From Guillardia theta CCMP2712 (lineage: Eukaryota; Protista; Cryptophyta), in contig NW_005434635.1 of assembly GCF_000315625.1 (NCBI RefSeq), positions 372,001 through 436,000 on the forward strand: a stretch of 64,000 nucleotides of DNA. Reading direction: 5' to 3'. Positions 6,201-53,929 of this stretch are shown here, one piece after another. Position 1 is the first letter of the stretch. Each line of letters starts with the position of its first letter. Under the pieces are notes generated by a model, which did no database searches, was not told the DNA's origin, and saw only the letters and a program-made list of their open reading frames with translations. Both the position numbers and the translations under genes were made by a program.

Positions 6201-6750
6201 GACGTCAATGACGCGTCAAGGAATCGGATTCTACCAGAGACCTCATCGGATTTCAAGAAGATGATGTCTGAGTCGTCATACATCTGCTGCAAATTTTCTC
6301 TCGAGGCCTCTTTCTTCTGCCTGTCCTCCCCGTCCTCTTCCTCTCCTTTCCCCCCATTACATGATTTTTCGCCTTGATCGCCTGCATGCACAAATCATTC
6401 AGACTGGTGACTGAAGCTTGCGCGACACATGTTAAACCAGTTTCTCCTCCTGATTCTCCTCCTCTCAGGCCCACAAAGTTGTTCACATGAAGATCCCTCC
6501 GTGTCTGCAGCAGAAGTCTCCTGTAACATGCACCATGTAAGGACGTGCAGGTAAGGACAATGTGAACAGAAGGAGGGGACAAAAACCTTAGGAGTGTATG
6601 CGCATGTAGTTCAAGGAGTTGAGAGGTAAGACCATGCTCGCACTTGCACGTGGCTCCATGGTGCTCGAGCAGAGCACCTTGAGCAACCACGATGAAGGAG
6701 GCCCACAGGCAAAGGAGGAGAGTAGAAATTTGAATGAGCATCATCATCAT
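3298..6750 (-). CDS. AAMP: WD40 protein AAMP/Sqt1 (uL16 chaperone family) with N-terminal signal peptide and LRGG-containing leader; multi-exon
   Basis: Spliced motifs: acidic region then EDDAAACIARAGPVYSLSTSPYDSSKFACGGGDDSLSLW; AAAMDGVIKVW; NWMEWHPRGSVILAG; MDGSVRIWE; FRGHHKAILSIAITRDAKFVLTGSDDSTCRAF; N-terminus MMMMLIQISTLLLCLWASFIVVAQG. Confidence 0.8.
3588..3707. repeat. (CAG/CAA)n trinucleotide array in an AAMP intron
   Basis: Interleaved cagcagcag/caacaacaa blocks. Confidence 0.9.
3995..4084. repeat. (CAGGTG)15 hexanucleotide microsatellite in an AAMP intron
   Basis: Perfect tandem copies. Confidence 0.95.
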
Positions 6751-13448: not shown

Positions 13449-16389
13449 CACCATCACCATCACTCCATCACCATCACCATCACTCCATCACCATCACCAT
13501 CCCCTCTGCTTCATCTTCATCATTCCGATTCTTCCTCTCCTCACCAGCCCTCATCCAGTGCCTGCTGAGCGACTGACGCACATTTTTGCTTCGTGCCGAG
13601 CTCATCTTGGTTGACCCACTTGTATCCTCTACTCTCCATCTCTACGATTACAATCAGACGACACCAGGATCTCTCTCTCTCTCTCATCCCCTCTCCCCAT
13701 CCCCCCACTCTCGCTCGCTCGCTCCCTCCCTCCCTCGCTCCTCTCCTCCCCTCGCTCTCTCGCTCCCTCCCTTCGTCTCCCTCGCCAGCTCTTCCACCTC
13801 TCCTTGCAAAGGTGGATTTGCCAGAAGCAGGGAAGCCGACCATGATGACGACTTCCTTTGAGGAGGGAAAGTTCAAGACTGGTGTAGCCCTGCTGAGCAA
13901 GTGAGAAGGGAGGAGGAGGAGAGAGGAGGAGAAGATGACAACAAGAGAGGACATTGACGGGAAGGATGGAGAGTGAGGGGGGGAGGACAAGAAGAGCAGA
14001 GCAGAGCGCAGGACAGGACAGGACAGGACAGGACAGGACAGGACAGAGGAGAGAGCAGCAGAGGAAGAGAGGAAAAGAAGAGAGGAGGAGGATGGAGGTG
14101 TGAGGATGGTCTGACGTTGGCTGCATCACGTCGGCAGGGTTGAAGCCAGAGAATGTGAACTCCTGGAGGCAAAAGGGAGACCATGAGCCACGAAGACAGC
14201 AGAGGGCGAAGAGGAGGAGCAGGGGGAGGAGGCAGAGGGTGAAGAGGCTGAGGAGGAGCAAGAGGAGGAGAAAGCAGAGCAGAAGGAGGAAGAGAAACAG
14301 GAGGATGAGGAGGAGGAGGAGGAGGAGGAGGAGGAGGAGGACGGAAACGTTGCAGCGAGGAGGAGGATTTTCATGCCTCTAACGGACGTCCCATGAAGAA
14401 TTCTTCCGGGGTATGGAAATCGATACCTGCATTGAGGGCAAACTGAAAGAGGGAAATGTGAGTTTTGAAGGGAGGAACACAGCAGCGCCAAGGAGAGGAG
14501 TAGAGGAGTAGAGGAGTAGAGGAGGAGAGGAGGAGAGGAGGAGAGGAAGAGAGGAGTAGAGGAGTAGAGGAAGAGAGGAAGAGAGGAAGAGAGGAAGAGA
14601 GGAGGAGAGGGGGAGCAAGTCAAAAGGAGATAACAAGAGTAAGAGTCCGAGGAAACAAGAGGAGATAAGCATCAACACTAGCAGACTAACCTTGCGATCG
14701 CTGTCGGAAAAATCTTTCTCCCTTGCTTCAATCCATGGCCTCTCACTGTTCCTAGTTGATCAACACCTCCCTCCTCTCCTCCCCGTCAATCCAACGTACC
14801 CGAGGGGCCGACCGGCTGCGTCCCCGACGTAGAAAGAGCCTTTGACGTTGACTTCGCAGCCCTGAAGGCAAGAGATGAACGTGTGAATGTCAACGACAAC
14901 GGCTCTGATCTCGCCTTGAGCTCTTTCATCTTCTCCACTGTCTTGAACCACATCCCTGCATACAGATGTTCAGTCAGGATGCTGCTCAAATATGCTTCGC
15001 CCCTCATAGCGTGCGCGCTCTTGAACGGTTCGCTAGATCGCCATCAAAGTTCAATGTGCAGCAGTCATGCATCGAATAGAGAAACATCCCCATCATCAAC
15101 ATCGAACTGACAACAACTTTCAGAGTGCAACGTCATCACACCGGGAGCTGGCTTTCGGTTCTCGTCCGAGCCATAGCAGGCAAAGAAGATCAGAGGGCAG
15201 CCAAGGGCCGAGTGGATCGACGAGATCTGAGAGATCGGAATCAACAAGGAGCACAGACCATGAGATTCTTTTACCTTATGCTCGACCCCTGCCTCGTAAT
15301 CTGGATTCTTGTCGATCCTTTTCTGGTTGCTGATGATCACAATGCAAAATCCATCCTTGACGAGCGATTGCAACTTCGGTTTGAGAATAGAAGGACGGAT
15401 CAAGCACCTTCAGTCATCATCATCGTTGTCGTTTTCTTCCTCCTTCTCCCATTTAACCACCAACAGGTTTCAACACACCCCAGCCGAGTAACAACAACAA
15501 GTCCAACCCCATCTATTGTCAATGGTTGCATCATTTCCATCATCATCTCCATCTCGATCATCTCTCTCGTCGTAACCGATTCAGCAGCCAGCATGTTATT
15601 ACCAGTCGTCGAAGTTCTGAGGAAATTTCTTTCTGCTCTTTGTCCTGATCAAAGTGCCATCGAGGTCGAACGCAGCAATCTGCCATGAGCCTCTTTCAGA
15701 CTTGTTTCCCGCGTCTCAACGCAGACAACAACAACCTTCTCAGCTCCTTGAAAGTCACAAGACTTCCACATGAGCAGGCTTGCTTGCTTGTCGTTGACCA
15801 GGTCCTTTGCCGTCTTCTTGGGCCCAAAGATCGGCGCTAACTGCAACACAACAATCAAATCTCCCAGCCATGGCGCACAAGTAGACTTACTTTGACAGCC
15901 TTCTGCTGCACCCTTTCCTCCTGATCCCCCTCTTTCCCTTGATCCTCCTCCTTCCTCCTCTTCCCACACACCTGCCATGGGCACGGGGACTTAAACAGCT
16001 CAGAATGAGGCAGCGCAGGCAACCTTGTCCGACGCGCCCTCCTCCTTGCCCTTACAAGCAGCTTCCTCTTCTACAAGGATGAAAGGGTTCCAGTCGATCC
16101 TTTCTTTCTGCTTCAAGCATGCATACAGCCACTTGACACTGACGGCACGCACCCCCTCCTTCTGCAGCCTCCCCTCCAGCTCTGCCCCTGAGCATTCCCC
16201 GAAGCGCAGGGACAGGATCTCATCTCTCTTCTTGTCCGCTTCGCAGCACACGATATTCGCGTCTTCCCCTGCCTCCACCACCTTCCCGCCATTCTCCGCC
16301 ACCTGCGCTTTGAGAATGCACTGCTGCATCGGGCCCTTACACTGGATGATCATGCTCAGCCCATGAAACATGGCGGCGCTCTCGACCAT
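12303..16389 (-). CDS. PNKP: Bifunctional polynucleotide kinase/3'-phosphatase with N-terminal BRCT-like domain (multi-exon)
   Basis: HAD motif [15 protein letters not shown]...DW; IVIISNQ; RKPAPGMW; [10 protein letters not shown]; P-loop [13 protein letters not shown]; [10 protein letters not shown]; C-terminus [16 protein letters not shown]; N-terminal ..NGGKVV...[11 protein letters not shown]. Confidence 0.9.
13381..13500. repeat. (CACCAT)n microsatellite in a PNKP intron
   Basis: Tandem caccat with cactcc variants. Confidence 0.9.
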
Positions 16390-16595
16390 GTCGCTCCTTC
16401 CTCCTGCTGCCGTCACTTTCGCTCCTCCTATCACTGCCACCACCAGCATGACCACCCCCGCCATCCCCCCCCCGCCATATCCTGACTTCACTTTTTCGCC
16501 CCGACAGATTTCGGTACCCTCAGTAGCAATGGGGTAGAGGCGCCGACATGCGCTGTTGGCTCCTCCCGCATCTCTCCCGCCCGCATCGCCCGCCG

Positions 16596-33040: not shown

Positions 33041-34320
33041 GCTGGAAAGGAAGACCTCTTTGGACCGCGAGGCACTGACTTGCAAACGCGGGTGAAATCT
33101 CTAGAACGATATACTCCTGGTGCACAAAAAGGTCAGCGAAGGGAGATGAAAGCACTTATCGGTAATTTATGGTGATAGGTCACAATCAACAATCTTCATC
33201 TTGAAATAGAAATATGAAATTGTGATGCGTGACGAATCTGAGTTTGCGACTAGGCTGCAAGTACAGTGTAAGTCTATCCGTTCCTGACCCTATCTGCTAG
33301 AGCAACATGCCAGCACCCGATAGTCTATGATTACGAGGAATCGTTGTGCCCTGGCATGTTCGGCTTGCGCGTTACGCTTTGCTGCCACTGAGCAACATCT
33401 ACTATCAGCTGGTCCGAACTTGATCAAACCGGCCAAAGACAACACTCGATGCTACAACGCAAGTATGCACCCTGTAACATGCCTTCGAGGCTTTCATCCA
33501 CAGGCAGTATCTGTTAGAGCGCCATGCGCGTCATTCCTATCTACACTCCTCTCCCTGCATGGCGCGATGGCCAGGGGGACCCGCGCCGCCGCCATGCCTG
33601 CAGTCTGCAGGGGGGGCGAGGTGAAGCTCGTGGATAATGGGGGTAGGTAGTGAATGAGAGGGGTACTTGATAGATCATGTACTGGGGAATTTCTGGGTGG
33701 GGTCATGTCTTCAGGTGCTCGGGGTGGGGTCTACCATCCGTTTCAACTCTGTACCCGTCCGAGTTTCTTGAAATTTGAAATCAATGAGCAGCATTTCTAG
33801 AATCGGACCAAACCTAAACCTTAAAAATATTTATATTTATCAGCCAGGTAATCCTTTAAAAACAATATAATTAGTACTATTGGAACAGATCTTACAATGC
33901 AAAAAAGAAACCATTTTAAAGGTCCGTCATGTCGGGTGAACGTATGACGAGGACCAGGATAGTCAGGAGGAGAGGAGGAGAGGAGGAGAGGAGGAGAGGA
34001 GGAGGGTTAGCGAGGAGAGGATTGTTCAAAAGGATACATCACAGGCCTAGGAAACTTATTCAAGCCCGCGCCATGAATCCCTCAATGCACTGGCTCGGAC
34101 CCAATCTAGGAAATTCCTTGTTCGCAAATGAGGGGATTTTTATTGAGACGATAGAAATGTAGCCTGATAAGATATCACAGCAACGTTATAGATTGGGCTT
34201 GATGTTCTTGATGCTGTCGAATATCCCAATTCTTTTTGGCAATGACCAAATGATCTATTCGCATGTGACTGAGAGTAGTGGAGCGCAAACTTGGTCTAAG
34301 CTAACATGTCTAGAATTCAG

Positions 34321-36118
34321 ATGAGTTCGGCAGCAGCGAGGAGATCAATCCTGCTAGCCGCATGCATCTTGTTCTTCAGCTTGGGACTTCTTGACTCGTC
34401 CCTCGTGCTGAAAGACTCTCTGTTGCCGAAAGGAGCTTTGAACCTTGTTGGTATGTAAGCCCTTGCTTTTTTAGGAAAATCTTTGTGTAGATATGCTGAC
34501 CCTGCAGCAGCACATCACAAACTTGGATTCATTCGACTCAGAGGAGGATCGTCACACGAGGCACACGAACAAGGGGCAGGAGGTTTGATATCTCATGCCT
34601 GTCGCTTGTTTTTTCTCGAGAACAACTGAACGTTCAGTGACTGTCTGCCTTGCACGCAGAAAGCTACGAGGAGGAAGAGGAGGAGGAGGAAAGTAACGAT
34701 GTCCCTGAAGATGCGCCGGAAGGTTGCCCAGGCACGACATCAGAAATGGCAGGCAAGTCGTCGACATGCGTGGGATGTCCCAACCAAGCAGCATGCGCCT
34801 CTGGCCAGTCGTCTGCCCCTGATCCAGCCATAGAAGAGATCAAAGCGAGAATGTCGCTCGTGAAACACAAAATCCTCGTGCTGAGCGGGAAGGGAGGAGT
34901 GGGAAAATCGACAGTCGCATCTCAAGTTGCGATGGCGTTGAGCGGAGGAGGCAACGTGACTGGTTTGCTTGACATCGATGTCTGTGGGCCTAGTGCGCCT
35001 AGAATGCTCGGCGTTGAGGACATGGACGTGCATCAGTCAGGGTCAGGGTGGCAGCCTGTTTGGGTGGATGAGAACTTGTGCGTGATGTCTATCGGCTTCA
35101 TGCTCCCCTCACGAGATGACGCGGTCGTATGGAGGGGGGTAAGGAAGATTGGTCTGATCAAACAGGTGAAGTTGACACTCGCTCTTGCCTCCCCTTTTCT
35201 CATTGTCAAGTTCAGTTCCTCAAGGATGTGAACTGGGAGAAGCTTGACTACCTCGTCATCGATGCTCCTCCGGGCACATCAGATGAACACATCACAATCG
35301 CCCAGTGCCTCAACCAAACGTCAAACGTCGGAGCCGTCATCGTCACTACCCCACAGGTTGTTTCTTTGCCTGACCGAGTTCTCTTGCTCTCTTTTACGCT
35401 AAGAGAGCATGTGCTTCTGCTGTACCCGTTCCTCCTCTTCCTCACATCTTCTCATTGACCAGGAGGTCGCACTGTTGGACGTCAGGAAGGAGATCAACTT
35501 CTGCAGGAAAGCAGGAGTCAAAATCCTTGGGGTCATAGAGAACATGGCCGGTTTTGTCTGCCCTCACTGCGGAAACTCCTCAGAGATCTTCGTTCCGAGC
35601 GAAGCTGACTCAGGTCGTGAACGAATTCATGTCACTGACTTCACCTGTGCCTCACTCCAGCTTGCTCTTTTCAGTCCAAGGACCCAGCGCGGTCCTCCGG
35701 GGAGCGGAGGCGATGGCCAAGAAGCATGGTATTCCCTTCCTGGTAATGCACGTGCACTTTTCCTGCCACCTGCAAACACGCTGCATGCTATTCATCCACC
35801 AGTTCACTCTGCCCAACACCTCCCATGCTCTCAACCCGATCCCCTTCAAACAACCTCTCCTCCTCCTCATCCTCCTCCTTTATTTCCCGCCATGCTCTTG
35901 TATCCCATTCACACTGTGAACAAAGGGAAGGATTCCTCTAGACCCGAAGCTAGGTATCGCGTCAGAACGAGGGGTAAGCACAACCCACAGCTCCTTCTCC
36001 ACCTCGCTGCTCCTCACTCACGAACTCCCAACAGGAAGCGCTCAAGAATTCTCTTGCGTTGCAGTCTCTACAGTCAGCTGTCCAGAATCTCCGAATCAAC
36101 TGCAAAGGAAACACCTGA
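34321..36118 (+). CDS. NUBP1: Cytosolic-type Fe-S scaffold NUBP1/Nbp35 with signal peptide and RLRGG leader (multi-exon)
   Basis: CX13CX2CX5C ([24 protein letters not shown]); GKGGVGKST; DIDVCGPS; [13 protein letters not shown]; VTTPQEVA; [11 protein letters not shown]; GKIPLDP; leader [26 protein letters not shown]...GFIRLRGG. Confidence 0.93.
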
Positions 36119-36353
36119 GCAGCGTAAGTTTGAAGTGTGGGGTCATGTGTAAGCAGCTGGGGCTGGTACATCAGTACATCCTTTCATTCATCGTCTGCCT
36201 CTGCTGCTGCCCTCTCCTCCTCTCTTCTTCTCTCCTCTCTCTCCCTCCTCCAAGGACGACGTGGTCGCTTGTCCCCATACCAGCCCGGAGCTCCGCAGCC
36301 CTTGTGTCCTGCGTTGCGGGAGCACGGGGAGGGGTCGACCAGGCAGGAGCAGC

Positions 36354-37325
36354 TCACTGAGGGACAGGCGCGGCGGTCAGCTGGCTGGTGCTGCTCGGCT
36401 GCCCGGCCGGGACGGACTTGAGGGAGACGAGGAGGCTCCAGGCTCCCTGCTCGCTCTGCATGAGAGACGCGCAGAGGCCGCCGAGGGGGTCGGCGGGCTC
36501 CATGCCGATGTCGTCGAGCATGTTCTCGAAGGTCTTGAGGGGACCAGCGTCACCTCGGAGCTTGGTACCGGGCCTGGCGAGGCGAATGATGGCGATGAGC
36601 TGGCGCTGCAGCTGGAGCATGTCGGGGGGCTGATGGGCATTGTAGTCGAGATCCCAGGCCATGGCGTTGATGAGGTACTGGCCGCTGGCTGGAGGGCGAA
36701 GGCTGAACTGGAAGCATTCGTTGTCTGCGGGGCCGGCGTGGAGGCAGAAGAGCTGGGAGGCAGGGCGGCGCATGACGGTGTCGAGGACGGCGAGGCAGAG
36801 CTGGCCCTTGGCGGAGGCAGCGTAAGCGCTTGTCCGGTTGCACGTGAGGAACCCTGTGGAGAACGAGGAGCGGTCGACGATCATGTCGGAGAACTCGAGG
36901 AGGACGCCGAGCTTGACCTGGACGAGCGACGGAAGAGGGGAGGGGGAGCGAGGGTCCGAGTCGAGGTCAGGGAAGGCGGAGGACAAGGACGGGGAGGGGT
37001 CGTGGGTGGAGAGGGACGCGACGGGCTTCTGCCATTGGGAGGGAAGGTCGGCAATGAAGGCGTTGTCGATGTCGAGGGTGTCGGCGACGTCAGAGCTGGG
37101 GATCTCCTGGGGCCTGAGGAGCTTGAGGGCGCGGGCGGTGGTATGCTGCAAGTGCTCGAGCGCGTCTGAGGAGGTACGCTTGTGTCCAGGAGAGCCAGGG
37201 GTGGGAGGGGGAGGGGGAGGCGGAAGGAGGCAGGAGGGGTCGTCCTGCGGGAGGGAGGGGAGGGCAAAGTTAGAGGGAGGAGGAGGAGGAGGAGGAGAAG
37301 GATGTTTGGAGGTATGGGATGACAT
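36354..37325 (-). CDS. Orphan protein, left copy (323 aa, intronless)
   Basis: MSSHTSKHP...TAAPVPQ*, strong GC3 bias; paralog of 38417-39430. Confidence 0.7.
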   Translation of the reverse strand: MSSHTSKHPSPPPPPPPSNFALPSLPQDDPSCLLPPPPPPPTPGSPGHKRTSSDALEHLQHTTARALKLLRPQEIPSSDVADTLDIDNAFIADLPSQWQKPVASLSTHDPSPSLSSAFPDLDSDPRSPSPLPSLVQVKLGVLLEFSDMIVDRSSFSTGFLTCNRTSAYAASAKGQLCLAVLDTVMRRPASQLFCLHAGPADNECFQFSLRPPASGQYLINAMAWDLDYNAHQPPDMLQLQRQLIAIIRLARPGTKLRGDAGPLKTFENMLDDIGMEPADPLGGLCASLMQSEQGAWSLLVSLKSVPAGQPSSTSQLTAAPVPQ

Positions 37326-38416
37326 GAGGGGAAGGGTAGAGGAAAGAAGGGGATGGGAGCTTGGTGCGAGTGGGAGGAACAAGCCTCCTCTAAAGAAGGG
37401 AAGGGCGGGGGGGCTGGTTGTCTTTTCTTTGGGGGTAGGGGGTTCTTTTGTACCGGTACTTTTGTTTTGTTGGTTGAGCTGGGTACCATTGAGAGGGTAG
37501 TTTAATAGGTAAAATTGGGGTTGATGATATGACCCGTACATGAGTGGAACTTTCCTATCGGGTGGTAGAACAACACGGGGTAGGGTGAACCAGGGGGGTT
37601 GCAGGGGTGGTATGCTCATCCTGCAAACTGGTTTGTGATCACCCTACCCCCAATAATCGTCTGAAAATTTGGAAAAAGAAGGGGTACTTGAAATTGGTGT
37701 GCAGTACCCCGTGTTGGTTGATGATTTTACTCTAGACGGGTAGGGTTTGGAAAGAACGAGGGTAGGGGTTATTACCCACCCTGTACACTTCCATCAACTC
37801 ATCTATCAAAGTAGGGGTGGACAATGATAAGTTCATCACCCTACCCACACATGGGGTACGAGACCGGGAACAACACGGAGTCTATGGCACACAGAGCGAA
37901 AGAATGTACGAAAACAAGCGAATGAGGGGAGAAAAGAGAAGGAGAGCAGAGCAAAAGACAGGAAAGATGTCAAAAAGAAGAAAAGAGACGAGAAACAAGA
38001 GTAGAAACAACAGCTAACAAAGAATTCAGCGATGAAGTATTTCAATGCCAAAATAGGCAGGGTAGAAGTGATGTGCAAAAAAGAGCGTGAAAATAAGAAG
38101 GAAGGAAGAAGCATAAGACAAAAGAAATCAATGTCAGACAAAGACGGCGAACAGCAAAAACAAAAAAGAAAAGAGAGATAACATAGGCCAAAAAAACCAA
38201 ACATGCTAGCAAGAACACGGAAATACACAGACAGACACATCATAATTATACATGAGGAAGAATATCTCAAATGAGAGCGCACCAAGTCTGACCAAACCAT
38301 AAGACAAAGAATGTGCAATTCAAACAAAACCTCCACAATCACCAAAACAACATGCTTATTCTCCTCCCACTCGCACCAAGCTCTCATCCCTCCTTCTTTC
38401 CTCTACCCTTCCCCTC

Positions 38417-39430
38417 ATGTCATCCCATACTTCCAAACATCCTCCTCCTCCTCCTCCTCCCTCTAACTTTGCCATTCCAGAAATGACATTCCTGCCCCAT
38501 CTGCTCTTCCAGCCCATGGAATACCCTTCCATTCCCCAGGACGACCCCTCCGGCCTCCTTCCACCTCCCCCTCCCCCTCCCACCCCTGGCTCTCCTGGAC
38601 ACAAGCGTACCTCCTCAGACGCGCTCGAGCACTTGCAGCATACCACCGCCCGCGCCCTCAAGCTCCTCAGGCCCCAGGAGATCCCCAGCCCTGACGTCGC
38701 CGACACCCTCGACATCGACAACGTCTTCATTGCCGACTTTCCCTCCCAATGGCAGAAGCCCGTCGCGTCCCTCTCCACCCACGACCCCTCCCCGTCCTCG
38801 TCCTCCGCCTCCCCTTACCTCGACTCGGACCCTCGCTCCCCCTCCCCTCTTCCGTCGCTCGTCCAGGTCAAGCTCGGCGTGCTCCTCGAGTTCTCCGACA
38901 TGATCGTCGACCGCTCCTCGTTCTCCACAGGGTTCCTCACGTGCAACCGGACAAGCGCTTACGCTGCCTCCGCAAAGGGCCAGCTCTGCCTCGCCGTCCT
39001 TGACACCGTCATGCGCCGCCCTGCCTCCCAGCTCTTCTGCCTCCACGCCGGCCCCGCAGACAACGAATGCTTCCAGTTCAGCCTTCGCCCTCCAGCCAGC
39101 GGCCAGTACCTCATCAACGCCATGGCCTGGGATCTCGACTACAATGCCCATCAGCCCCCCGACATGCTCCAGCTGCAGCACCAGCTCATCGCCATCATTC
39201 GCCTCGCCAGGCCCGGTACCAAGCTCCGAGGTGACGCTGGTCCCCTCAAGACCTTCGAGAACATGCTCGACGACATCGGCATGGAGCCCGCCGACCCCCT
39301 CGGCGGCCTCTGCGCGTCTCTCATGCAGAGCGAGCAGGGAGCCTGGAGCCTCCTCGTCTCCCTCAAGTCCGTCCCGGCCGGGCAGCCGAGCAGCACCAGC
39401 CAGCTGACCGCCGCGCCTGTCCCTCAGTGA
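38417..39430 (+). CDS. Orphan protein, right copy (337 aa, intronless)
   Basis: Pro/Ser-rich N-terminus plus ~180-aa globular-looking C-terminal region; ORF intact in both copies. Confidence 0.7.
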   Translation: MSSHTSKHPPPPPPPSNFAIPEMTFLPHLLFQPMEYPSIPQDDPSGLLPPPPPPPTPGSPGHKRTSSDALEHLQHTTARALKLLRPQEIPSPDVADTLDIDNVFIADFPSQWQKPVASLSTHDPSPSSSSASPYLDSDPRSPSPLPSLVQVKLGVLLEFSDMIVDRSSFSTGFLTCNRTSAYAASAKGQLCLAVLDTVMRRPASQLFCLHAGPADNECFQFSLRPPASGQYLINAMAWDLDYNAHQPPDMLQLQHQLIAIIRLARPGTKLRGDAGPLKTFENMLDDIGMEPADPLGGLCASLMQSEQGAWSLLVSLKSVPAGQPSSTSQLTAAPVPQ

Positions 39431-40202
39431 GCTGCTCCTGCCTGGTCGACCCCTCCCCGTGCTCCCGCAAGGCGGGACTCAGGCGCTGCGGAGCTCCGGG
39501 CTGGTATGGGGACAAGCGACGACGTCGTCCTTGGAGGAGGGGGAGAGAGGAGAGAAGAAGAGAGGAGAAGAGGGCAGCAGCAGAGGCAGACGATGAATGA
39601 AAGGATGTACTGATGTACCAGCCCCAGCTGCATTCACGTAGAATTTGCCTCCTCTTTCCCTCTCTCCCGTATTTCATCCTCCTTTTGAAGCAAATTTCCC
39701 TCTCCGACTGGTTGCATCAACACTGCTCATAAACATGCCCTGCAATCACTTCACTGAGCATGTAACCATGCTTGTCTCTGCCATCATCGCTGTATTTCTT
39801 CTCGCCTCCATGTCGTCTCAGGTTGATCCTGTCTCCTTCATCCATTCAGCTTCTGTTCTCACCCTCAGCCCCGTCCCGTCCTGTCGCTTCCCCTCCCTCC
39901 TCCTGTTCCTCCCCTGCCATAACGAGCGGGTTTTTTTCTAATCCCGTTTTTCGATCCCCCGCCTCCCCGTCCTGAAAAAATTTCCACCGCCCCCACCGCC
40001 GCCTAACCTCCTTCCCTCCCTCCTCGCTCTTCCTCTCTTCCTCCCTCTCTCCCTCCCCCTCTCTCTCTCTCCCTCCTGTCTCTCTCCCTCCCTGCCTCCC
40101 TCCCTCCTGTCTCCCTCCCTCCCACCCTTTCCTCCCCCCCTCCCCCCTCCCCCCTCCCTCCCTCCCCTCCCCTCTCTCCCTCCCTCCCTGACTTCTCGCA
40201 CC

Positions 40203-49957: not shown

Positions 49958-51638
49958 TCAAAACTTCACCGGCTCCGCGTTGAATCCCAGGTTGGCGAAA
50001 GGAAACATGCTTCTCTTGAGCTGTAAGACTCTTTACACAACCCCAGGAAAGGATCGAGGCGAACAAACCTGACGTTTGTCTTCATCAAGCAACTCGATTC
50101 TTGTCAGGTCGTTGCGAAATTTCGCCTGGGGAACTACATGAGGCCGGCTTCAAGTTCCCCTCGCTCCCTTCTCCTCATTCCCAACACCAGCGTTCTCTCC
50201 TGTTTCTCCCCTCCTCTCAACTTCCTCATCCCTTCTCCTCATCTATCTTCCCTCTTCCCTTCTCTGTTAGCCTTCCCTTCCCCCCCTCCATTCCCTGCTC
50301 GCCCCTGCTCACCTTGTACCACTTCGCCAGGATCCGACCGAAGTGTGGTTCCTGCAGGCGGGAGGGTCACCCGGGATGGCATTGCAGGAGGACTCACAGA
50401 AAAACTTGGCTCCTTCTCGGCGAAGGGAAAATTCTTAATGAACTCCGAGTAGAGCTCCCGGAACGTGACGTTGCCTTGGTCGGTCAACCGACAGTTGGCA
50501 AACGCTTCAACGCAGTACGTCAGGATCTCCTTCACTTCCTTCCTGTCGTCCTGAGGTGCTGCAGACCTCTTCGACTTCCCTGCGCTCATCCCTGCATCCT
50601 TTCCCTTCAACATCTTACCCTTCCTGGCCTTCCCTTCGCTCCTCTCCTGCTTCGCCTTCACCGCCTGCCCACCACTCTTAGCGGATGAGCGAACGACGTT
50701 CAGTCCCAGCTTGGCAAAAGACTTGTCCATCTCTTTGTCGTAGAGCGCCTGGACGGTGCGGAGGGGCGTCAAGTCCGACTCAGTGTAGTGCGGGTTGATG
50801 AGCGACATGCCGATATACGAGCCGCTCCTGCTCTTCTTCAACGGCTTCCCCGTCTTGGTCTCGTACCAGGCCTGGATGCTCCGCCCGAGTGTCACGTTGG
50901 GCAGGACGTCCTCGGAGGCGAAGGAGGGGAACTCCTCTCTGAAGACTCTGCTGATGGTAGCGAACCTCACACGGCCCTTGAGCCGCAGCAGACTGCTGGC
51001 AAACGCCTCAAACGCTCCATTGACTTGCGACACTTTGAGCGGAGCTGGAGAGTCTCCTGCGAGGAAGAAGAAAACTCATCAGGTAAGACAAGGAAGATGG
51101 CGCAAGAGAATGAGGAGAAGAACTCGTTGTCTCTTCACCTTTCTTGCTCTCGGCTGCCTCCTTTCCTCCTTGATCCAAGTCCGTGACAGCAGTCTCTGCA
51201 TGGCAACGCTTACAACATGCAAGTTGGCAGGAGATTAGGACCTGTTGAACCTTGTGACATGAGCAGAGAGCAAACTCTTCTTGCAGGCTGAGATGCTGCA
51301 AAGGAAAACTGAAAGGATACCATCAATCAGTCGAAAGCTCTCCACTCCTAACCGCATCCTCCTCTGCCCTCCCCCTCCTCCCCCTCTCTTCATTCTCACT
51401 GGAATTTTCAGTATGTTCTCACCGCAGGGCTGCAGATCCCCGAGCAGCGAACGGGATGGCGCGGGTGCAGGGATGCAATGCCGCCAGCATGGAGGAGAGG
51501 ACTGAACCCATCGGCAGGATGAGGAGCCAGAAGGAGAGACAGAACAAGGAAGCTAAGGCTCAGAGGGGGGGAGGAGGAGGAGGAGGAGGAGGAGGAGGAA
51601 CGAGCGGGGGGTGGAGGAGGAGCGCCCATTCCCTGCAT
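49958..51638 (-). CDS. Predicted plastid-targeted protein with two winged-helix-like repeats (multi-exon)
   Basis: Hydrophobic signal LSLSFLVLSLLLAPHPADG-FSP, then basic/Ser-rich transit-like region; repeats FEAFAS..GRVRFATISRVF..LGRSIQAWY..SYIGMSL and VEAFAN..GNVTFRELYSEF..FGRILAKWY..PFANLGF. Confidence 0.6.
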
Positions 51639-52113: not shown

Positions 52114-52133
52114 TGTGGCGATCGATGAATGGG

Positions 52134-52246
52134 CAGGACAGGACAGGACAGGACAGGACAGGACAGGACAGGACAGGACAGGACAGGACAGGACAGGACA
52201 GGACAGGACAGGACAGGACAGGACAGGACAGGACAGGACAGGACAG
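52134..52246. repeat. (GACAG)n pentanucleotide microsatellite; a shorter copy lies at ~14009-14046
   Basis: Perfect tandem copies. Confidence 0.95.
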
Positions 52247-53929
52247 CCAAGGAGAGGGAAGGACAGCCAAGGAGAGGAAAGGAGAGGAAACGTGGCCATT
52301 TAGAGTGGGGAGAATGACAACAGGATCACGACTGGACCGAAAGCAAAAATGTCAGAAGGAAGGAGACGACGGAAGATTAGGGAGGGCAGGAATAAGCTAT
52401 GTTTTCACTTGTCATTGAATAATAAGAGGACGCTCAGAGCAGCAGCAAAACAACTCTACACATTTGCAAGTTTTGTCCCACATGGCATAAGATCGGCAGG
52501 TGAATCGGAGGCAGAACTAGGAAATGGAGGAATCTAGGCAGGAAGAATGTTCATACGATACATGGTAGGGGATTAGAGGAGATTGAGAAGGAAGGAGTGA
52601 CTTCTATAGGGCTACCTTGTCTCCTCTGACCTGCTACATCTGCGAGTTTAGGAGAAGAGGCTGGAAGTCAGGCATGGCTGCTCATGTTGGAACAGAAGTA
52701 GCAGAAGCCGACTAAGTCACTCTGAGTGTTCAGGTGACGGTGATATTGACTGATAGGTGTAATGAATCTCTCTGAATACCTCTGCTGATCTCATCGGCTA
52801 TGCCCGATTCCCTGCTGCTGCACAACTGCCCTTGCAGAACTCCGAAAGCGGGGCTGCTGTCCAGTCAGCCTCCCTCCACAGCCGGGCAGCATACCCACAC
52901 TGCACTCGCATGTCCTCTGCTCGAGCCCTCTCCCGTCCGTGGTTAAGATTCTGAAGTTTCAAGCTCAAGAGGGCCATCATGAATCGATGAGAAGAGACGA
53001 AGAAATCGCCTTCGATTCCTGGACGGACTTGTTCTGATCTTTATGGAGATGGATCTGAAGGGCGGTACTCTGAAGAGATAGAACTTTTGCATAAGAGTGC
53101 ATCGCTCAAAGATGAATGTGAAAGAATGGAGCGATCAAAGATGAAAGCGACAGATTGCTCAAAAATCACCTTGAAACACCACAGAGGTGTCATTGAGTTT
53201 GAAACTCAGGAACTCGAACAACGCGAAATAGCATTTTACCGAGGCAACTATACAAGCAGTGCAATAGCAGGGCCCTGGGCTGGTCGGGAAGAAGGAGGTT
53301 GGTGGCTCCTCTCAGCAAAAAGCAACTCAGGTGTTTATCTTTGACAGAGACCCTTGTACTGTTGTGAGTAAGGCCGTAAGGTCTGTGACATAGACCCTTG
53401 TAGGTCTAGAAGCGTTGAAGGCGAGAGGGACATGACTAGATAGAACGTGGAGAAAAGGTGCGTCATAATGCATTTATTTCCGCCTGTCTTACGTCAATCC
53501 GGCATCTCGAGGCCTGCAGCAGCCAAGTCTGTCTGATCAGTCCTCCCAATCATGGAAAACGTAGCGCGATTTTGATCCCTTGGGTCCCTTCACCAATAAC
53601 AATCAGCTGCCTGTAGGTTGCAAGGCTCTCAGCCCATCGACCAATGAGAGCTATAGCAAGAGCGAGGGCTCGTTGACCTCATTGCTCACGAGCATGTTCC
53701 AGCAGGTTAAACGAGGTTGGCAGGAAAGGAAGGAAGGCCCGTCGAATTAGGGAAGGTCTGAGGCTGGAAGAGGAGGCGAGGATGAGGAGCGGAGCATAAT
53801 CGAACTCAGAGAGGCAGAGGAGGCTCTCCAGGGCTCCTCCCTCCCCTCATGTTTCTACAGCTCAGCATGCGCGGCCATTGTTGAGCGACGCAACTGCGAC
53901 TAGCAAACAGGTCACGGCCGGTACGAACG

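Follow-up and report, generated by a model that had tools for sequence, protein, structure and literature searches.

A conserved LRGG motif in the leader of the periplastid Nbp35 of Guillardia theta, a candidate processing site that matches the ubiquitin tail

The gene for the Fe-S scaffold protein Nbp35 that we describe here, from the cryptophyte Guillardia theta CCMP2712, encodes a signal-peptide-like start and a basic linker that end in RLRGG, directly ahead of an acidic stretch and the conserved domain. The LRGG leader motif is real and selected, and apparently undescribed in the searchable literature. It is almost certainly functional. We lean towards a model in which the bipartite leader ends in LRGG and a deubiquitinase-type protease of the periplastid compartment (PPC) cuts after GG and releases the mature Nbp35, a reading to which we give a modest preference. 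What is new is the occurrence of LRGG in the Nbp35 leader, its RNA support and the codon-level test; the PPC copy of Nbp35 and the periplastid CIA pathway have already been published (Grosche et al., 2018; PMC6105332) and add little by themselves.

Structure and transcript of the Nbp35 gene

The gene lies at 34321-36118 on the plus strand of the window, by which we mean the whole analysed stretch of 64,000 nucleotides. Direct reading and exon assembly gave eight exons and a product of 400 amino acids. The seven introns measure 50-183 nt each, all are bounded by GT..AG, and the frame is kept throughout. The features of the gene are as follows, with the basis of each in brackets:

34321-34450, plus strand: exon 1, with the ATG at 34321, n-region, h-region and first part of the basic transit-peptide-like linker (reading, hydropathy, RNA piece 34319-34449/50)
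34348-34392, plus strand: hydrophobic core of 15 residues (reading, hydropathy)
34451-34510, plus strand: intron 1, 60 nt, GT..AG, with a NAGNAG acceptor at 34505-34510 (RNA joint 34449 to 34510, cut +1)
34511-34582, plus strand: exon 2, with the linker end, RLRGG and the first post-motif residues (reading, RNA)
34534-34548, plus strand: RLRGG motif, CGA CTC AGA GGA GGA, residues 52-56 (reading, ortholog comparison)
34660-35165, plus strand: exon 3, with the acidic tract, CX13CX2CX5C and Walker A (reading, Pfam)
34668-34691, plus strand: tract of eight glutamates, E8 (translation)
34725-34796, plus strand: ferredoxin-like CX13CX2CX5C, residues 90-113 (translation)
34887-34910, plus strand: deviant Walker A, GKGGVGKS (translation)
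35216-35356, 35463-35613, 35675-35742, 35926-35973 and 36035-36118, plus strand: exons 4-8 (RNA joints, translation)
35559-35570, plus strand: CPHC (translation)
36116-36118, plus strand: stop codon TGA (translation)

From the N-terminus onward, the product consists of the signal-peptide-like start, a net-positive linker, RLRGG, the residues from SSHEAHEQ onward, the eight glutamates, the Cys motif, Walker A and CPHC. The start combines a basic n-region (MSSAAARRS) with the hydrophobic core, whose mean Kyte-Doolittle value reaches up to 2.85. F, Y and W are absent from residues 20-49, and L is a possible +1 residue. An earlier reading of this DNA, made from the sequence alone, had placed the motif at the same position and had described the acidic stretch and CX13CX2CX5C after it, and direct reading bears it out. 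Its in-frame splicing also stands, with the start of exon 2 corrected from 34508 to 34511 by the RNA.

A contig of 1276 nt assembled from RNA (run X3) is intron-free and spans 34319-36192, with all seven introns removed. Aligned to 34100-36300, it makes six of the splice joints explicit, and the exon 2/3 junction falls inside a masked GAG repeat, where its sole support is the length of 37 unplaced contig letters, which corresponds exactly to 34660-34696. Since the contig crosses both the leader exons and the Nbp35 domain with the introns gone, the two stand on one RNA. The sequence-only reading had made its case depend on such a joint between leader exons and domain, and the X3 contig joins them. 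Further, 11 RNA runs contain about half of the words sampled over these 2 kb, the share that one expects of spliced RNA.

Two details of the transcript may affect the N-terminus. At the tandem acceptor of intron 1 (CAGCAG) the X3 contig takes the distal CAG, which makes exon 2 begin at 34511 with one alanine fewer, and the protein may be one alanine longer or shorter through the use of this acceptor. A second in-frame ATG at 34306 may serve as an alternative start; the 5' end of the X3 contig lies 2 nt before the ATG at 34321. A word search with exon 3 identified the G. theta CCMP2712 protein GUITHDRAFT_109471 (P0002), which is 100% identical to the gene product. This NCBI model begins at an internal Met (MAGKSST) and is without the leader, the acidic tract and the first Cys of CX13CX2CX5C.

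Family, clade and source of the orthologs

The protein belongs to Pfam PF10609 (ParA/NUBPL), with E values of 2e-89 for P0002 and 9.5e-36 for exon 3 alone. It carries the features of Nbp35, which are the N-terminal CX13CX2CX5C, the deviant Walker A GKGGVGKS and the C-terminal CPxC cluster-bridging motif (here CPHC). The first of these is used to tell Nbp35 from Cfd1 (PMC6105332). In a maximum-likelihood tree, the G. theta protein and seven environmental leader-bearing sequences form one clade (support 97/95), which is nested in a red-algal group with Galdieria and Chondrus (100/98) and stands apart from the opisthokont-type and green-type Nbp35.

In G. theta, the host Nbp35 is of the opisthokont type and the PPC Nbp35 of the red-algal type (Grosche et al., 2018; PMC6105332). 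Since the gene belongs to the red-algal clade of Nbp35, to which Grosche et al. (2018) assign the PPC copy, its phylogenetic placement supports its assignment as the PPC copy of Nbp35, with an origin in the red-algal endosymbiont. By the same clade membership it would correspond to JGI model 186667, which was localised by Grosche et al. PPC copies of Nbp35, Nar1, Dre2, Tah18 and Grx3 have been reported for G. theta, and their leaders carry GFP into the diatom PPC (PMC6105332); the presence of PPC CIA copies is repeated by Pyrih et al. (2021; PMC7980591). Periplastid targeting of Nbp35 and a CIA pathway in that compartment, both proposed in the sequence-only reading, are therefore supported by the red-algal clade and the published localisation (PMC6105332), and were already known.

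The orthologs were found on environmental contigs. Those of the P0075/P0213 type lie on 14-kb Tara Oceans contigs with 60% GC, adjoining a gene for a 433-residue Oscp1. The best named matches of this Oscp1 are from Rhodomonas lens and Rhodomonas sp. CCMP768 (55% and 52% identity, full length, 424-430 bits), and its other named matches reach at most 277 bits. The environmental orthologs thus probably belong to uncultured cryptophytes, for which this one neighbouring gene, in one lineage only, provides moderate evidence. A metagenome scan with exon 3 returned 15 loci and no new leader-bearing lineage.

The PPC Nbp35 gene of two environmental lineages has a head-to-head neighbour about 180-230 bp upstream, which encodes a RING-finger protein of 200-205 residues (zf-RING_2, weak ARMET_C). 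Upstream of the G. theta copy we saw no counterpart. The RING-finger genes are located as follows:

L002, 2204-2821, minus strand: RING-finger gene
L003, 1781-2398, minus strand: RING-finger gene
L004, 1317-1934, minus strand: RING-finger gene
L010, 4153-4755, minus strand: RING-finger gene
L011, 163-765, minus strand: RING-finger gene

A further environmental Nbp35, of the WSPVY type (L017, 195-1310), falls outside the PPC clade and has an in-frame VLRGG four residues before the canonical Met, with a Ser/Phe-rich frame upstream. This VLRGG is either due to chance or represents another lineage with such a leader.

Conservation of LRGG among Nbp35 leaders

The conservation of the motif was examined in one gene family, Nbp35, with orthologs from environmental contigs. 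Among 209 Nbp35 sequences with the Cys motif, 12 have at least 50 residues ahead of it, and within these 12, LRGG occurs in all seven leaders of the PPC clade (7/7) and in none of the five long N-termini outside the clade (0/5). It reads LRLRGG in P0121 and P0075, RLRGG in P0013 and P0128, GLRGG in P0122, and CLRGG in P0024 and P0015. In the environmental orthologs, leader and domain form one open frame on genomic contigs, with no splicing assumption involved. When the leaders are aligned on the motif, the L, R, G and G columns are invariant (7/7) and R at -1 is found in 5/7, with every other column between -12 and +12 at 3/7 or below. Ahead of the motif, identity among the leaders averages 32%, where shuffled leaders reach 27 +/- 5%. 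Over the 150 residues that begin with the Cys motif, the orthologs are 65-92% identical.

The charge of the flanking segments is conserved in character. In all eight leaders, including that of G. theta, the part ahead of the motif contains 5-10 K+R and 0-3 D+E, and the part between the motif and the Cys domain contains 11-17 D+E and 0-3 K+R. The motif thus sits at a switch from basic to acidic in every leader examined; a separation of a neutral or basic leader from an acidic mature start had first been claimed for this gene and AAMP. Directly after GG the leaders have S, N, E, V, R, I, G or T, and never proline.

About 40 further variants from the 90% clusters retain LRGG. The one exception, P0243 of the P0013 cluster, stems from a single contig of 1258 nt and has HRHPGG in place of HRLRGG and differs at several further positions close by, a variant that may represent either a misassembly or an allele in decay. 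In composition-matched shuffles, LRGG arose in 0.45% of trials for the G. theta leader and in 0.3-2.7% per leader (0.003-0.027) overall, and the product of the per-leader chance probabilities is about 5e-15. Within about 45 kb of environmental contigs, no open frame outside the Nbp35 genes has a hydrophobic N-terminus followed by [LIVM]RGG, and the one other frame that was flagged is without a hydrophobic start.

The codons for the motif are CTC AGA GGA GGA in G. theta, CTG AGG GGA GGC in L001, CTC CGC GGC GGG in L002 and CTG CGG GGT GGC in L005. Because the four residues are kept while the codons differ synonymously and the remaining leader stays at the shuffle level, we conclude from the sequence comparison that LRGG is selected at the protein level and is not a by-product of GGA repeats.

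A second leader with this motif is found in the window, in a gene that the sequence-only reading had named AAMP:

6437-6750, minus strand: leader of a WD40-repeat gene (candidate AAMP/Sqt1), with the start at 6750 and LRGG at 6468-6457 (reading)

The minus-strand frame from 6750 opens with MMMMLIQISTLLLCLWASFIVVAQG and comprises a stretch of 94 residues with a signal-peptide-like start, then LRGG, and then ESGGE and putative acidic exons. Its predicted later exons are WD40-like, with generic WD40 similarity only in a phmmer search of PDB, and Pfam searches on the single exons of this gene (about 15-55 residues each) gave no match. As sequence, this second LRGG leader is real. No further signal-peptide-like start in the window has [LIVM]RGG after it, including those at 16548 (plus strand) and 40203 (plus strand) and the Phe-type one at 51638 (minus strand). 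The earlier statement that the leaders of the secretory proteins (cathepsin H, GT11, PIG-X) and the Phe-type plastid leader are without the motif holds in this limited sense, gene identities aside. Of the shared leader class proposed at the same time, the conserved and selected element is strongly supported, on the grounds of the 7/7 orthologs, the codon test and the second leader in the window, and its cleavage by a ubiquitin-type protease is what we infer.

An RLRGG at 51559 on the plus strand was considered as a third instance and rejected, as it is the antisense of a serine tract in the minus-strand Phe-type leader. The latter (51399-51638, minus strand) combines an n-region of poly-Ser/Pro with a hydrophobic core and ADG followed by F, as in Phe-type stromal plastid leaders, and its antisense reads RLRLRGGEEEE, a false match to LRGG. 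Several other features of the window were recorded. At 13954 on the minus strand, a signal-peptide-like start is followed in the same frame by the P-loop GFPASGKST; the protein is kinase-like and of cytosolic type, and its first exon is free of LRGG. Near-identical open frames beginning M..QLGLVHQYILSFIVCLCCCPLLL... lie in inverted orientation at 36145-36360 (plus strand) and 39633-39425 (minus strand), which fits the palindromic duplication noted earlier at 36153-39631. A run of N (assembly gap) at about 2575-2680 appears as X in the open reading frames, and a long (CAGGA)n microsatellite occupies 52130-52250.

LRGG as a putative processing site

According to our analysis, LRGG is quite likely a cut site, since a strict tetrapeptide ends a freely evolving leader at the basic/acidic switch, just before the part that is homologous to the mature protein. 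LRGG also constitutes the last four residues, the C-terminal tail, of ubiquitin and NEDD8. As the motif equals this tail, extends to LRLRGG in two lineages and has R at -1 in most, it suggests an enzyme whose usual activity is cleavage after LRGG. Since proteins enter the PPC through the ubiquitin-dependent SELMA, ubiquitin and its processing enzymes must be present there. Whether the cut would be made by a deubiquitinase-type enzyme we regard as evenly balanced.

Under the model that we favour, the signal peptide would deliver Nbp35 to the lumen of the ER that surrounds the plastid, and passage into the PPC by way of the SELMA translocon, which is derived from ERAD, would then be the task of the short, basic and otherwise freely evolving transit-peptide-like linker. 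There, a ubiquitin-tail-specific (deubiquitinase-type) protease would cut after GG, as in ubiquitin precursors, and the mature Nbp35 would begin at the residue after GG, with an acidic N-terminal extension. We speculate that the conserved acidic tract may help to keep the protein off the stromal import route. SELMA import has been described as ubiquitin-dependent, and the nucleus of G. theta encodes a ubiquitin that carries a targeting leader (PMC12412216). The deubiquitinase clade ptDUP is missing from cryptophytes, for which 'an alternative enzyme' is expected (PMC12412216), and a putative deubiquitinase that contains a Ufm1-specific-peptidase domain is encoded in each of the four nucleomorphs sequenced (PMC6559170).

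The structural context of the motif differs from that of ubiquitin. In the AlphaFold model of the ortholog P0122, LRGG lies within a low-confidence segment of 100 residues between the signal-peptide helix and the fold, with pLDDT below 50 for residues 16-114. The leaders have no beta-grasp ubiquitin fold before the motif, and the roughly 27-55 residues between signal peptide and motif are predicted to be disordered. The LRGG leader is thus a mimic of the ubiquitin tail and not a ubiquitin-like domain. Efficient recognition by deubiquitinases ordinarily depends on the folded body of ubiquitin, and its absence here is the weak point of the deubiquitinase model.

It is less likely that LRGG is a selected sorting or recognition element and not a cut site, and we would assign this explanation a minor share. 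The motif might then act as a tail mimic that engages ubiquitin-binding parts of SELMA (Cdc48-Ufd1-Npl4, E1/E2/E3), or, together with the acidic tract, as a mark for retention in the PPC. Conservation and position at the charge switch fit such a role equally well, the acidic character of the tract that follows the motif is likewise conserved, and SELMA import depends on ubiquitin (PMC12412216). However, where a variable leader closes with a fixed tetrapeptide that abuts the mature-aligned part, a processing site is the usual explanation. Moreover, it is the surface of ubiquitin, mainly the Ile44 patch, and not its tail that ubiquitin-binding domains recognise.

Equally improbable to us is a cut by a protease unrelated to deubiquitinases, for example a dedicated PPC presequence peptidase, in which case the identity with the ubiquitin tail would be convergent. 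Organelle presequence peptidases do use short Arg-containing motifs, such as the R-2/R-3 rule followed by the mitochondrial processing peptidase (MPP), and the motif has no ubiquitin fold ahead of it. Against this, the match exceeds four residues, with R at -1 in 5/7 and LRLRGG in two lineages, proline is never found at P1', and the PPC runs a ubiquitin system and must already contain enzymes that cut after LRGG.

Two further explanations fare worse. The leader could direct Nbp35 to the ER and the secretory route instead of the PPC, and what is directly seen is the signal-peptide-like start alone. We know of no secretory role for Nbp35. As Nbp35 is a cytosolic-type Fe-S scaffold whose red-algal-clade copy has been placed in the PPC by a GFP fusion (PMC6105332), this route is very unlikely. 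Finally, an origin of LRGG as a functionless by-product of purine-rich (GGA/GAG)n tracts, to which the AGAGGAGGA-rich DNA that encodes the G. theta motif and the plentiful GGA/GAG repeats nearby would point, is ruled out, as is chance, by the ortholog, codon and shuffle tests: the orthologs encode LRGG by other codons in genomes of 60-73% GC, the motif is invariant within leaders that are otherwise at the shuffle level, the combined chance probability is minute, and a hydrophobic start with [LIVM]RGG is confined to the Nbp35 genes of the environmental contigs.

The deubiquitinase-type processing that we favour can be compared with several known systems. The bipartite PPC targeting sequences of cryptophytes and diatoms have the same layout of signal peptide, basic linker and cytosolic-type red-algal housekeeping protein (PMC6105332), but the searchable literature tells such linkers apart by the +1 residue only and makes no mention of an invariant LRGG end like the one seen here. 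PPC targeting peptides have been called 'not conserved and poorly characterized' (Moog et al., 2011; PMC3101018). In the precursors of ubiquitin, NEDD8 and ISG15 and in ubiquitin fusions, which are processed by the UCH, USP and related families, the same (L-R-)L-R-G-G stands directly before a downstream polypeptide. Deubiquitinases tolerate any residue but proline after GG. Ubiquitin precursors have the beta-grasp fold before this tail, whereas the Nbp35 leader has a short disordered linker, and its cleavage is what the model proposes. The papain-like protease of coronaviruses, which has a deubiquitinase fold, cuts linear LXGG in polyproteins, outside a ubiquitin fold. This enzyme is viral and its P3 is variable, while the Nbp35 leaders have an invariant R at P3 and belong to organelle import.

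Within the plastid field, ptDUP has been proposed as the PPC deubiquitinase of the diatom SELMA (Hempel et al., 2010, as cited in PMC12412216). According to that account, it carries a targeting leader and acts as a deubiquitinase on pre-proteins imported into the PPC, but it is proposed to remove ubiquitin and not the leader, and its clade is reported as absent from cryptophytes (PMC12412216). The motifs of MPP (R-2/R-3) and of the stromal processing peptidase are likewise short and located at the border between targeting and mature parts; they are, however, loose and read by metalloproteases, whereas LRGG is strict and identical to the ubiquitin tail. In the searchable full-text literature on Guillardia, cryptophytes and transit peptides, a scope that leaves many subscription papers outside, we found no mention of an LRGG leader motif. 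The closest match was an unrelated LRGGG remark on Omp85, and the papers on ASAFind 2.0 and by Gile (2015) and Moog (2011) contain neither LRGG nor RGG.

The recognition and maturation of PPC-resident proteins is an open point of complex-plastid biology, and to our knowledge no processing peptidase has been reported for PPC targeting peptides. The deubiquitinase that is expected for SELMA in cryptophytes is still missing, and LRGG points to the class of this missing enzyme. A strict LRGG provides a sequence rule by which the periplastid and nucleomorph proteome can be predicted, and this rule predicts the exact mature N-terminus. It also reveals truncated gene models; those that are truncated at the 5' end, such as GUITHDRAFT_109471, would conceal LRGG leaders in proteome-wide screens. 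Extending the reading beyond Nbp35, we tentatively propose, with somewhat less than even confidence, that the PPC leaders of cryptophytes terminate in a mimic of the ubiquitin tail and that a protease of the deubiquitinase type cleaves it, which would couple the removal of the leader to SELMA import. If true, the deubiquitinase class would thereby gain its first organelle presequence peptidase, and the protease may be the 'alternative enzyme' that replaces ptDUP, with the nucleomorph protein with the Ufm1-specific-peptidase domain as one candidate.
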